Positions 11,652 through 18,076 are shown, counted from the stretch's first letter. The stretch: 64,000 nt of DNA from Macrostomum lignano (GCA_002269645.1 NIVC01000797.1:248001-312000); one strand, 5' to 3'. The notes: generated by a model not told the origin, from the letters alone. A program made the numbers and translations.

Positions 11652-13550
11652 ATGTCGTCCTCCATGTCTGGCTGGCTCACTTCCTCCAACATCTCTGGAC
11701 GGGAGGATCTGGTGCACATTGCGAAGCTCGCCGAGCAGGCTGAGCGATATGACGACATGGCGACTGCCATGAAGGCCGTGACTGAAAAAGGTCAGGAGCT
11801 GGGTAATGAGGAGAGAAATCTGCTCTCTGTTGCCTACAAAAACGTTGTCGGCGCTAGGAGGTCTTCGTGGCGTGTGATCTCTAGCATCGAGAGCAAGACC
11901 GAGGGCAGCGAGAGGAAGCAGTCAATGGCTAAAGAATACCGTCAGAAGATTGAGAGCGAACTGCAGAGGATCTGCAAGGAAGTGTTGGTAAGTCGCTCAT
12001 CATTTTGAAAGTAAATTGAAATTTATGTAACGTTGTTATTATGGCATGGAGCTTGTCGCTTATTGCCATATTGTATAGTACTATCTTATTAATTAATTAT
12101 TAATTTAAAAAGTTCACAGGTAATATCAATGACAATGTTCAGTGACTGATCGATAATATTAGCCCTTTAGCATTAGGGAATTAAAAATACAAATTCTGAT
12201 AGGTAGGGGCCTAGGCTAGTTCTAGTATCAATGCCAATTGCTAATAGTATCATCTAATATGGCAAAATCTATTGCCAGTACTGGTATCAATTAGACATTA
12301 TGTCTTGTGATTCTTAAATTTAAGATTAGGCCTAAGACAATTATATTTTAATTTTTGTTACACTTAAGCTATAAGGTAGATATAGTTTATTTAATTTAAT
12401 AATTCTAGTTGCTCTAAATCTATATTATTCATTATTACAATAAAATAATTTTAGTAAGTAGATGCTTCTTAATCTTAGGCTGTTTTATTGTTAAACTATT
12501 GATTAAATGATAAAGTAATATATTTGTGATAAATTTAAAGAAAACATATCTGTATCAATGTTATGGCCTATCATAGCTTCAGTTTTTTTGTTGAGTATAT
12601 TTTAATGTAATTCTTGCATGCTTAATCAAATTCATGAATATTATATAATTAATAAAGTAATCCCATAAATAACTGAATAATTCAAATTAATTTTTTTAAA
12701 TGTTAGCAAAAATTTGGTTTTGTTGAACTCAACTTTCAATGCATGAAGACTGAAATCTGTATAGTAAGGTGCAACATTAAGGATTAAGCTTGAAAATTTG
12801 CATGGTTCTATTTGTTTGATCCCATTTTTTGCTTCTCTAGTGCATGTTGGTACAATAACGTTTGCTGTGTTATGCCATTTTTTAAACTAACATTTTTAGA
12901 GCCTCTTGGATGACTACCTAATTAAGAATGCTCCCAACTCGGAGTCGAAGGTTTTCTACTTCAAGATGAAGGGCGATTATTTCCGCTACCTAGCCGAGGT
13001 GGCCACCGGCGATGAGCGCAAGAACGTTGTCGACAGCTCCGAGGGCGCCTACAAGTCCGCCACTGACCACGCCGAAACTGAGCTGGCCACCACCCATCCC
13101 ATCCGCCTTGGCCTGGCCCTCAATTATTCAGTGTTCTTCTACGAGATCAAGAACGACCCGGAGCGGGCTTGCCAACTGGCCAAGAAGGTGGGCGATTTGT
13201 TTATTTCACGATGGCTTGCTGTAAATTTTACTGGCCTTTTAAGCACTTGGATGATTTTAAAGTTCTCGTCGCACTTTTTTTATACAGGCCTTCGACAATG
13301 CGATTGCGGATCTCGACGATCTGGCCGAAGAGTCCTACAAGGATTCCACTCTGATAATGCAGTTGCTGAGGGACAATCTGACTGTAAGTATATTAGCAAA
13401 TTTATTAAATTCTGTCCAATAGATCAATTTCTTTTCATTTAATAAAATTTATTACACTTTTCTGATTAATTTTTTCTCCAAACCCCTTCAAATTTGCAGC
13501 TCTGGACCTCCGAGCAGGGCGGCGACGATGGCGAACAGCAGGACAACTGA
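11652..13550 (+). CDS. 14-3-3 protein, isoform A (256 aa, 4 exons)
   Basis: Exons 11652-11987, 12900-13187, 13288-13383, 13500-13550 (TGA); all phase-0 GT-AG junctions. Motifs: [70 protein letters not shown]. Confidence 0.97.
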
Positions 13551-15366: not shown

Positions 15367-18076
15367 GACCTTCTCGACGAGCATCTGATCCAGAAGGCCA
15401 CTCTGTCTGAGAGTCGAGTGTTCTACCTAAAGATGAAAGGCGATTATTACAGATATCTTGCCGAGGTAAGAATTCTTATAATTACCAATGTTGTACGAGT
15501 ATGTACATTGTACAATGTACATATACGAGCCGTACCATTTAGTGATTTGGAGGGTGAGAGTAAAAGTATAGAGATGCAGGGAGCTGGGCGACGAGGGTAA
15601 ATACAGCTAGTATTGTTTTTGAGAGAGTAATATTTCAGAGAGGGTGATCAAGCGGAGTTGGGAGGGCGAAGGAGAAAGCAGAGTTGCGAGGGAGAGAGAG
15701 CTGGGAGTGCGAGAGAGAGAGTTAAGAGTTAGAGTTAAGAGTTTAGAGTTAAGAGGCCGGAGGGAGAGGGAGAGGAAGAGAGCAGGGAGGGCGACGGAGA
15801 GAGCAGAGAGTTGTGAGGGCGAAAAGAAAAAAGCAGAGCAGATTTGGGAGGGTAAGAGAGAGAGAGAGAGAGCAGATTTGGAAGGGTAAGAGAGAGAGAG
15901 AGAGCAGATTTGGGAGGGTTAAGAGAGAGAGAGAGAGAGCAGATTTGGGAGGGTAAGAGAGAGAGATAGAGTAGATTTGGGAGGGTAAGAGAGAGATAGA
16001 GTAGATTTGGGAGGGTAAGAGAGAGAGAGAGAGAGAGAGCAGATTTGGGAGGGTAAGAGAGAGAGAGAGCAGATTTGGGAGGGTAAGAGAGAGAGAGAGA
16101 GAGAGAGAGAGAGAGAGAGAGAGAGAGAGAGAGAGAGAGAGAGAGAGAGAGAGAGAGAGAGAGAGAGAGAGAGAGAGAGAGAGAGAGAGAGAGAGGAGAG
16201 TCGGGAGGGAGTCAAGATCAGTTGGAAATTCTCATCTCTGCATGTACATCCACAACAAATTAACAAATTAATTAACAAATTAACAAGCAGCACAAATTAA
16301 GTATTTGCCTCACTGATCTCAACGCCGCAGACCGCGGTCCTCAAACCATCCTCAAAGTACTTGTCAATCCCTCGCACACGCAGGTGGCAGTTGGCGAGCA
16401 GCGCACAGACGTGGTCGACAAGAGCATGGAGGCTTACAAAGCGGCTACGAAAAGTGCGGAAGAGAAACTGCCCACCACTCATCCGATTCGGCTGGGCCTG
16501 GCGCTGAACTTCTCCGTTTTCTACTACGAGATCCGCAGCGAGCCAGACCAGGCCTGCCAGCTCGCCAAGAAAGCCTTCGACGAGGCCATCGCCGAGCTTG
16601 ATAATCTGCCAGAGGATTCTTACAAGGATAGCACGCTCATTATGCAGCTGCTTCGGGACAACCTCACGGTAAGGCTGCTCACATGTTGTTTTTTATTGTA
16701 GCCGAAAATCCCATTTTAGAAGATTTTCGCCACAGGAATCCCATTTTGGATGATTTTAGCTACAGGAATCCCATTTGGGAGATTTTAGCGACAGGATTCC
16801 CATTTTGGATGATTTTAGCCACCTAGGATTCCCATTTTTGGATTTTTTATCCAGGAATCCCTACTTTGGGAGATTTTAGCGACAGGAATCCCATTTTGGG
16901 AGATTTTAGCGACAGGAATCCCATTTGGGAGATTTTAGCGACAGGATTCCCATTTTGGATGATTTTAGCCACCTAGGATTCCCATTTTTGGATTTTTTAT
17001 CCAGGAATCCCTACTTTGGGAGATTTTAGCGACAGGAATCCCATTTTGGATGATTTTAGCTACAGGAATCCCATTTGGGAGATTTTAGCGACAGGATTCC
17101 CATTTTGGGAGATTTTAGCTAAAGGATTCCCATTTTGGGAGATTTTAACTACAGGATTCCCATTTTGGATGATTTTAGCTACAGGAATCCCATTTTTGGG
17201 AGATTTTAGCTACAGGATTTTTTTTTATGATTTTAGCTACAGGATTCCCATTTTTGGATTTTTTATCCAGGAATCCCTACTTTGGGAGATTTTAGCGACA
17301 GAAAACTCATTTTGGGAGATTTTTTGCGAAATGAGTCGTGATTTTAGCCAAGAATACCAATTAGTGTGGATTAGGAGGAGTGGGTAGGAGGGGCGGATTC
17401 CGGAGGGAATGAGGGGCGGATTCCGGAGGAAATGAGGGGATCCAGGAATCCCTTTTGTGAGATTTTAGCTACAGAAATCCCATTTTGAATGATTTTAGCT
17501 ACAGGAATCCCATTGTGGGAGATTTTATCCAGGAATCCCTTTTTGGGAGATGTTAGCGACAGAAATCCCATTTTGCGAGATTTTAAGTGACAGGAATCCC
17601 ATTTTGGAAGATTTTAGCCACAGGAATCCCATTTTGGGAGATTTTTAGCGACAGGAATCCCATTGTGGGAGATTTTATCCAGGAATCCCTTTTTGGGAGA
17701 TGTTAGCGACAGAAATCCCATTTTGGGAGATTTTATCCAGGAATTCTTACTTTGGGAGATTTTAGCGACAGGAATCCCATTTGGAAGATTTTTAGCGAAA
17801 GGAGTCCTATTTTGGATGATTTTAGCCAAGAATCCCATTTTGGGATTTTTTGTATAGGAATCTCATTACCGACGGGAATCCCACATTGGAAGATTTTTAG
17901 CGACAGTAATCCCATTTTGGAAGTCTCCTTTCAGCCAATACTGCACCACTAAACCAAATCTTTAAGTGTAAACTACATGTTGCTCATAGTTTATCCGCAA
18001 CCCTGTTTTACAATAACAGCTGTGGACATCTGAGCAGGATGCTGGAGAAGATGCTGATGGCGGGGATCATCATTGA
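15367..18076 (+). CDS. Second 14-3-3 C-terminal exon set (isoform B tail) with no N-terminal exon of its own; predicted to splice to exon 11652-11987 (259 aa)
   Basis: Exons 15367-15465 (DLLDEHLI...YYRYLAE), 16384-16668 (VAVGEQR...RDNLT), 18020-18076 ([18 protein letters not shown]); phase 0, intact GT-AG sites, no stops or frameshifts. No [16 protein letters not shown]-coding sequence was found by eye in 13551-15366. Confidence 0.9.
15860..16195. repeat. GA-rich repeat: AGCAGATTTGGGAGGGTAAGAGAG units grading into (GA)n
   Basis: Read directly; lies in the intron between 15465 and 16384. Confidence 0.9.
16700..17925. repeat. ~30-bp degenerate minisatellite (GGGAGATTTTAGCGACAGGAATCCCATTTT)n
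   Basis: Read directly; fills most of the last intron of 14-3-3 tail B. GGGA and TCCC within each unit are self-complementary. Confidence 0.9.

Follow-up and report, generated by a model that had tools for sequence, protein, structure and literature searches.

One N-terminal exon followed by two complete C-terminal halves at a 14-3-3 locus of Macrostomum lignano

14-3-3 proteins are universal phospho-dependent adaptors. Their diversity normally comes from separate paralogues and, in arthropods, also from the swapping of one small exon. The question addressed here is whether a 14-3-3 gene of Macrostomum lignano joins a single first exon to either of two C-terminal halves. The DNA analyzed, called the window throughout, is a 64,000-nucleotide stretch of record NIVC01000797.1 (GCA_002269645.1, Mlig_3_7) in which window coordinate n is record position n + 248000. 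The locus (L007) occupies window positions 5433 to 28076, which match record positions 253433 to 276076 with 100% identity over 22,644 bases. An earlier note, made from the window sequence alone, had proposed that one N-terminal exon (the head) serves two anciently diverged C-terminal halves (tails A and B).

The locus contains a single 14-3-3 N-terminal exon, followed by two complete three-exon C-terminal halves (Table 1). The lengths of all seven exons are divisible by 3, all are in phase 0, and the introns are all GT...AG. Tail A totals 144 amino acids (aa) plus TGA and tail B totals 146 aa plus TGA. The acceptor of the first tail B exon (B1) sits at the codon homologous to the start of tail A, and B1 has the same phase as the first tail A exon (A1). 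The two tails have separate stop codons, and AATAAA or ATTAAA hexamers, which are consensus matches and hence candidate signals, lie 3' of each. One shared upstream exon followed by two downstream modules of the same phase is the arrangement of an alternative 3' module. Translation agreed with the earlier note that the 112-aa head ends in phase 0 at EVL, with boundaries moved by no more than 1 base, and that both tails are intact, start at the same protein position and have their own stops. It also confirmed the intron positions given there: after LAKK in tail A, after YLAE in tail B, and between NLT and LW in both.

Searches of the window revealed only the one head. No second head exon was found on either strand of the 64 kb by tblastn of both full products (E ≤ 10), and a more sensitive search of the 1.8-kb spacer between the tails (13551 to 15366) detected neither a head nor a head remnant; the earlier note had likewise seen no other N-terminal exon. 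When the full-length proteins nearest to tail B were searched by their N-terminal halves, only positions 11652 to 11987 of the window matched. An in-frame stop at 15307 lies 60 nucleotides (nt) upstream of tail B, with no ATG in between. A private first coding exon for tail B was considered as well; the spacer contained no ATG-started mini-exon with a consensus phase-0 donor.

Table 1. Features of the M. lignano 14-3-3 locus in window coordinates (UTR, untranslated region)
Feature	Position	Strand	Description
5' UTR of the 14-3-3 gene, adjoining the ATG	11601–11651	+	Colinear alignment of related-species transcript L019 with window 11601–11987
Shared head exon	11652–11987	+	112 aa, ATG to KEVL, phase 0, donor gtaagt; helices A to mid-D
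Tail A exon 1 (A1)	12900–13187	+	96 aa, SLLDDYLI...QLAKK; acceptor tttttag, CTAAC motif at −13; donor gtgggc
Tail A exon 2 (A2)	13288–13383	+	32 aa, AFDNAI...RDNLT
Tail A terminal coding exon	13500–13550	+	Stop TGA at 13548–13550
Tail A 3' UTR and spacer up to tail B	13551–15366	+	AATAAA at 14637, 15251 and 15337 (consensus matches only)
Tail B exon 1 (B1)	15367–15465	+	33 aa, phase 0; acceptor tgccag, donor gtaaga
Tail B intron 1	15466–16383	+	Enlarged by a 30-nt repeat array and (AG)n at 15835–16200
Tail B exon 2 (B2)	16384–16668	+	95 aa, VAVGEQ...RDNLT; lacks the LAKK/AF intron
Tail B intron 2	16669–18019	+	Mostly a 30-nt tandem array, 16707–17867
Tail B terminal coding exon	18020–18076	+	Stop TGA at 18074–18076; part of GenBank PAA66868.1 and PAA76752.1
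Candidate poly(A) signals, tail B	18655–18699	+	ATTAAA at 18655, AATAAA at 18694 (consensus matches only)

The head-A-B layout is real and not an artifact of assembly. A second, independent contig, NIVC01001523.1 (locus L006), has the identical order, and a gene model from the older 2015 assembly (P0220; UniProt A0A1I8IT57) likewise covers both tails. The earlier note had allowed that a collapsed assembly might hide a first exon of tail B; the two contigs agree in the head-A-B order, and the older model links A and B. The window is rich in tandem repeats and has a perfect 1.2-kb inverted duplication elsewhere, so that a local error is conceivable. Such an error would have had to arise in two contigs and in an older assembly, across a spacer that is ordinary unique sequence, and we consider a collapse or chimera concealing a separate first exon of tail B to be extremely improbable.

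Over a 7.2-kb aligned block that runs from the head through tail A into the beginning of tail B, locus L006 and the window are 97.4% identical. The coding sequence of L006 departs from that of the window by one synonymous change alone, in tail B exon 2 (16491 G/A; 441 nt), and its tail B intron 1 is 1764 nt long. The two genomic copies have 1 difference in approximately 2400 bases, introns included, from window position 11152 (500 nt upstream of the ATG) to 13550. For positions 13551 to 19076, 3' of tail A, divergence from L006 was 0.66% in the spacer, 0.7–4% in the tail B introns and 1.3% downstream. The confinement of low divergence to the head+A part could reflect gene conversion or a recent sweep.

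The two tails are identical at 101 of 144 positions (70%) over their full length (BLASTP E = 3e-75) and at 97 of 133 (73%) over the ungapped core, in agreement with an earlier hand count of 98/134 (~73%). The proportion of synonymous differences (pS) between them is 0.745, which is saturated, and that of nonsynonymous differences (pN) is 0.185. Because pS is saturated and pN is low, we conclude that the divergence of tails A and B is ancient and that purifying selection has been dominant, as the earlier note had supposed in calling the duplication old and both tails constrained. Tail B is a 441-nt frame without a stop or frameshift, its six splice sites are intact, and its pN/pS is far below 1. 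Its GC content at third codon positions (GC3) is 0.70, the same as that of the head (0.70), and the surrounding DNA is 34–40% GC. The marks of a pseudogene (disabling mutations, lost splice sites and relaxed constraint) were all absent from tail B.

Comparison with other 14-3-3s indicated which of the tails has changed more. Tail B is nearer than tail A to each of 17 non-Macrostomum 14-3-3s (17/17; mean 75.2% vs 70.6%), and it retains the ancestral DYYRYL and LNFSVF, where all A-type sequences have DYFRYL and LNYSVF. Tail B is thus the more conservative tail and not a decaying copy. In a neighbor-joining tree of C-terminal halves, tail A fell within a Macrostomum clade with 87% bootstrap support, alongside two paralogues, Mlig010039 and Mlig006670, and transcripts from further Macrostomum species; tail B fell outside this A-type clade, near environmental sequences. 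From its place outside the clade we conclude that tail B has long been kept as coding sequence, yet it has no head or head remnant of its own. The sequences suggest a flatworm-wide lineage of which tail B is perhaps the only remnant in M. lignano. Six metatranscriptome proteins from soil and other sources (P0006, P0063, P0070, P0074, P0080 and P0083) are full-length 14-3-3s with B-like tails; they and the Macrostomum proteins have in common an N-terminal extension, SW(I/V)(E/D)T...R(E/D)(E/D)LV, and a C-terminal LWTSEQ.

The protein that would result from joining the head to tail B was compared with known 14-3-3s. Head+B matched Pfam PF00244 over positions 2–223 of 223 (E = 2.2e-104), and tail B alone matched positions 93–223. 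As far as residue 244, head+A and head+B both aligned with solved 14-3-3 zeta chains without a gap (E = 1e-110 to 1e-112). The head exon aligned without gaps to residues 3–98 of human 14-3-3 zeta, with window protein residue n corresponding to human residue n−14; tail B begins at window residue 113, which is human zeta S99 in the middle of helix D. In an AlphaFold2 model of head+B (mean predicted local distance difference test score [pLDDT] 87.5, predicted template modeling score 0.83), the helix at 87–122 continues over the head/B junction with pLDDT 95–97. Foldseek comparison of this model with human 14-3-3 beta and zeta gave template modeling scores of 0.96–0.97 and a root mean square deviation of 1.1 Å. 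Head+B is therefore predicted to take the nine-helix cup fold.

For the phosphopeptide groove, we took the canonical residues of human zeta to be K49, R56, R60, K120, R127, Y128, L172, N173, V176, E180, L216, I217, L220, N224, L227 and W228. All 16 of these are identical in head+A, head+B and human zeta, and K49, R56 and R60 are encoded in the shared head exon; the different groove walls foreseen in the earlier note were not borne out. The different outer surfaces that it had also foreseen are supported, as are different C-terminal tails. The tails differ at 36 of 133 core positions, 12 of them in helix F and 11 in loops, with helix limits that we assume from the structural literature, and their acidic C-termini differ in sequence. 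A few of the differences (L119F, Y126F, F174Y and Y178F) are conservative core swaps that are derived in tail A. The same dimerization helices had also been claimed for both products; this agrees with established 14-3-3 structure, in which we take the dimer interface to lie at residues ≤98 and thus inside the shared head exon.

Splicing of the head to tail A is confirmed by orthologous transcripts. The 256-aa head+A product is exactly UniProt A0A1I8II35, and orthologous transcripts of related species, L005 (SRR24204641; 98% aa identity to head+A) and L019 (from a Joint Genome Institute [JGI] sample), support tail A splicing with the same pattern. The 5' UTR of L019 follows the genome colinearly on the upstream side of the ATG. 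In that relative the head+A mRNA therefore starts upstream and takes on no spliced leader next to the ATG, and by analogy the same probably applies to the M. lignano mRNA. The paralogue Mlig006670 has the A-type exon structure, with boundaries after EVL, LAKK and NLT and exons of 96 aa and 32 aa as in tail A. Mlig010039 has one gap consistent with a tail A intron, and its loci look A-type.

Existing annotation of tail B is contradictory. WormBase ParaSite gives the 256-aa head+A protein at one genomic copy and, at the other, a 367-aa fusion of head, A1, A2, B1 and B2 (A0A1I8IT57). GenBank gives tail B alone, as a 124-aa coding sequence (CDS) starting from an internal Met (MKGDYY, ATG at 15433) and using both tail B introns (BOX15_Mlig017350g1/g2; PAA76752.1 and PAA66868.1). 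The GenBank annotation of M. lignano rests on RNA-seq assemblies only; leaders were trimmed, transcription units were cut at spliced-leader and poly(A) sites, and open reading frames (ORFs) were called afterward (PMC5730564). On the evidence of that annotation, tail B is transcribed and both of its introns are spliced out. A silent tail B, which the earlier note had named as a finding that would speak against it, therefore appears not to be what occurs. With a stop 60 nt upstream of B1 and no ATG between, a headless transcript would yield exactly 124 aa. The 22 residues that precede this Met show the same conservation as their counterparts in other 14-3-3s, so the GenBank CDS is almost certainly cut short at its 5' end.

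The presence at one locus of three conflicting models, with 256, 367 and 124 aa, is relevant to curators and to users of the gene sets. Head+A, presumably an abundant protein, appears to have no entry in the GenBank annotation of the assembly. No head+A protein from that annotation is recorded at L007 or L006, the exact sequence being present only in UniProt and WormBase ParaSite, and a single gene is recorded over the 22.6 kb of L007. A literature search found no paper that describes this 14-3-3 locus, and no mention of Mlig017350 was found in M. lignano full texts and supplements.

We propose, at about even odds, that the locus is a single 14-3-3 gene whose first exon serves two alternative 3' clusters of three exons each, and we infer a junction from 11987 to 15367. 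By default, donor 11987 would join the tail A acceptor at 12900 to give the 256-aa protein, and that transcript would end at the stop and poly(A) site of tail A. In a subset of transcripts, cells or stages, donor 11987 would instead skip tail A and join the phase-0 acceptor at 15367. The resulting 258-aa 14-3-3 would share its dimer interface and phosphopeptide groove with the head+A protein, differing in the helix-F/loop surface and the acidic C-terminal tail, and perhaps in function. We favor the splicing of one head to either tail because there is a single head, both tails begin at the same codon in phase 0, and the splice sites are canonical; because tail B, which is no domain alone, has long been held to the standard of a full-length 14-3-3 without a head of its own; and because the spacer, having no in-frame ATG exon, offers no private start.

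Several results weigh against this proposal. In an exact look-up of a 15-billion-protein collection, all eight conceivable tail B products (from a spliced-leader [SL] ATG, from an unspliced 5' extension, from head+B starting at either Met, and from A1-to-B and A2-to-B splicing) were absent, the 258-aa head+B sequence among them; this look-up is weak, since exact head+A is present there only as the UniProt entry, with no copy derived from M. lignano RNA-seq. The transcript-based GenBank model of tail B is headless at both loci, when a head-containing transcript would give a 258-aa ORF. This point is tempered because the transcript assembler applied a 0.75 isoform-fraction filter (PMC5730564), which would drop a minor isoform. 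No head+B-type transcript or protein was seen in relatives, though head+A orthologues were found in several Macrostomum species. The tail A acceptor is met first and looks slightly better (pyrimidine fraction 0.65 vs 0.55, CTAAC at −13). No second tail was found within 10 kb of Mlig010039 or Mlig006670, nor in the 7-kb first intron of Mlig006670. The inferred state of the junction, the headless model, the position and strength of the tail A acceptor and the lack of head+B in relatives are the reasons that our confidence is no higher.

Other searches bore on the same point. Among 109 full-length homologues, no convincing pair with a shared head and different tails was found. A junction-peptide search of a 5.8-billion-cluster protein database returned nothing above 75% identity; it also missed the known 124-aa entry and is therefore uninformative, and it appears to return only proteins up to approximately 1.75 times the query length. 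When a tail-B-specific peptide was searched as a degenerate DNA pattern in JGI metagenome and metatranscriptome contigs, the one match was a chance match in an unrelated ORF.

Two other explanations account for tail B without a head+B mRNA. In one, the first exon of a neighboring B-type 14-3-3 gene disappeared not long before the genomic copies diverged, and tail B, now transcribed as noise by read-through, has yet to decay. This would fit the absence of the head+B product from every database and of a second tail from the paralogues, and also the fact that the environmental proteins with B-like tails carry heads of their own. M. lignano became polyploid recently and its genome contains a great deal of duplicated and rearranged sequence (PMC10733133), and the copies are too alike for a test of current selection, with 1 synonymous difference in 441 nt compared with 0.66% divergence in the spacer. 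An orphaned tail would have had to keep 441 nt and six splice sites free of any stop, frameshift or splice loss, and a coding-type GC3 amid AT-rich DNA, after the deletion of a head that left no trace. By our estimate, neutral intactness allows only ~1–2% divergence since the loss, which is narrow when set against the saturated divergence of A and B, and no full-length B-type source gene was found in the M. lignano protein sets. We regard such a recent loss as unlikely, though not negligible.

The earlier note overlooked a second route to tail B without a head, namely, spliced-leader trans-splicing, which occurs in M. lignano. The leader is CGGTCTCTTACTGCGAAGACTCAATTTATTGCATG, 35 nt long, and ends in ATG (PMC8629364, PMC5730564). 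Because B1 is in phase 0, this ATG would be in frame with tail B. The unpaired B1 acceptor would take the leader and give a 147-aa C-terminal half, or 124 aa from the internal Met, from an RNA that arises after cleavage of the head+A mRNA at its poly(A) site or from its own start. Between 30 and 39% of M. lignano genes are trans-spliced and operon spacers are mostly <1 kb (PMC8629364, PMC5730564); the AATAAA matches at 14637, 15251 and 15337 place B1 ~25–730 nt past a possible tail A poly(A) signal, an operon-like distance. Like the downstream genes of M. lignano operons (PMC8629364, PMC5730564), tail B has its acceptor close 3' of the likely poly(A) signal of an upstream gene on the same strand and an annotated CDS that begins at the first internal Met, and the GenBank pipeline, given a trans-spliced tail B, would produce exactly the annotated 124-aa CDS. 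Unlike them, the tail B "gene" is only part of a domain, and its acceptor, TGCCAG, is outside the enriched trans-splice motif YTNCAG. This mismatch counts weakly, since [T/C]TNCAG is found at only ~44% of known trans-splice sites (PMC8629364). The leader-spliced product would start in the middle of helix D, with neither the dimer interface nor K49 and R56, which bind phosphate. Tail B has kept all of its groove residues and its evolution is slower than that of tail A, as expected of part of a full-length protein, and the exact SL-ATG product was absent from the 15-billion-protein collection (weak evidence). A headless tail B made by leader addition is in our judgment rather unlikely, and could run alongside a cis-spliced head+B isoform. 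It is quite improbable that a free 147-aa half 14-3-3 (helices D'–I), translated from the leader AUG without the dimer interface and with only half of the phosphate-binding site, acts as a new kind of 14-3-3 modulator. The same holds for a variant in which intergenic trans-splicing, as known from Drosophila mod(mdg4), links the head exon to a tail B pre-mRNA that is transcribed separately.

Several other features were observed in the window. Positions 26948–28140 and 28370–29562 form a perfect inverted duplication with 1193-nt arms that are 100% complementary and 229 nt apart; a 151-nt tandem array is present in both arms, and the structure is either a real palindrome or a long-read assembly artifact. 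An intronless 443-aa ORF on the minus strand (59767–61098) resembles a rhodopsin-type or Srw-type G-protein-coupled receptor, with Pfam scores of 25.1 bits for 7TM_GPCR_Srw (cut-off 22.2) and 25.4 for 7tm_1, which is under the cut-off of 30.5. Locus L006 has an annotated major-facilitator transporter gene at 19366–23707 (PF07690, 607 aa); its counterpart in the window, at ~20000–24100 on the minus strand, consists of membrane-like ORF fragments only (21702–22561, no Pfam match), and no transporter gene from the window copy is recorded in the protein collection searched. The tandem-repeat load is extreme, with 47 Tandem Repeats Finder rows in the window; examples are a 24-mer array at 1–1846, (ATCT)n at 32081–33611, (ATAG)n at 43212–44142 and 20-mer arrays at 2346–3646 and 35023–36437. 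Most of the long ORFs of the window are translated tandem repeats. Positions 51983–53476 are 57% GC, and both strands have long ORFs there (472 aa and 384 aa) that overlap and show no significant Pfam match.

If one head is indeed spliced to either tail, the gene would exchange the C-terminal 57% of the protein while keeping the dimer interface and groove constant, a natural experiment that would reveal the roles of the helix F/loop surface and of the autoinhibitory acidic tail in client choice and regulation. If both isoforms exist, their dimerization would be identical and heterodimers would form freely, and heterodimers of otherwise identical subunits would be informative. M. lignano is amenable to transgenesis, RNA interference and in situ hybridization, so that the question is directly testable.

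The locus can be compared with several known systems. Tail A belongs to the same clade as the separate paralogues Mlig010039 and Mlig006670 and has the same exon structure; both paralogues carry a head of their own and only one tail, whereas tail B is headless. Two further proteins with repeated tails, from Elysia chlorotica (P0001, 389 aa) and an "Acipenser" contaminant (P0003, 370 aa), were rejected as analogues: their repeated tails are identical in sequence and reflect either tandem duplication in the very recent past or an artifact of assembly or annotation.

In Drosophila 14-3-3 zeta (leonardo), three mutually exclusive copies of one internal exon are regulated by competing RNA pairings (PMC6071210). 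That cluster and the M. lignano locus belong to the same family, have coding exons duplicated in tandem inside one gene, and keep the dimerizing N-terminus constant while helices of the C-terminal half vary. Over-long database models in which the duplicated exon is concatenated, comparable to the 367-aa M. lignano model, are common in insects, mites and nematodes and reflect this duplication. The systems differ in what is exchanged. Arthropods swap one internal exon (approximately helices F–G) with constitutive exons downstream; the M. lignano unit is three exons, makes up 57% of the protein, and brings a separate stop and probably a separate poly(A) site, with nothing constitutive 3' of the tails. 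The M. lignano copies also have different intron positions, and their 30% divergence looks, by eye only, larger than that of the insect exon copies in one gene model. A search of the M. lignano locus for docking and selector RNA pairings gave only short AT-rich inverted matches and no convincing pairing.

Similar in form are the 3' variable region of Drosophila PGRP-LC (PMC6191721) and the alternative C-terminal exons of insect serpin-1 (PMC10513286), in which an invariant 5' portion is spliced to any one of a set of homologous 3' modules. Such modules each close the reading frame, and the choice of splice site is coupled to the choice of 3' end. The isoforms of PGRP-LC and serpin-1 were demonstrated experimentally, whereas the second M. 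lignano junction is a prediction. The M. lignano module differs further in being the second half of a single helical bundle, cut in the middle of a helix.

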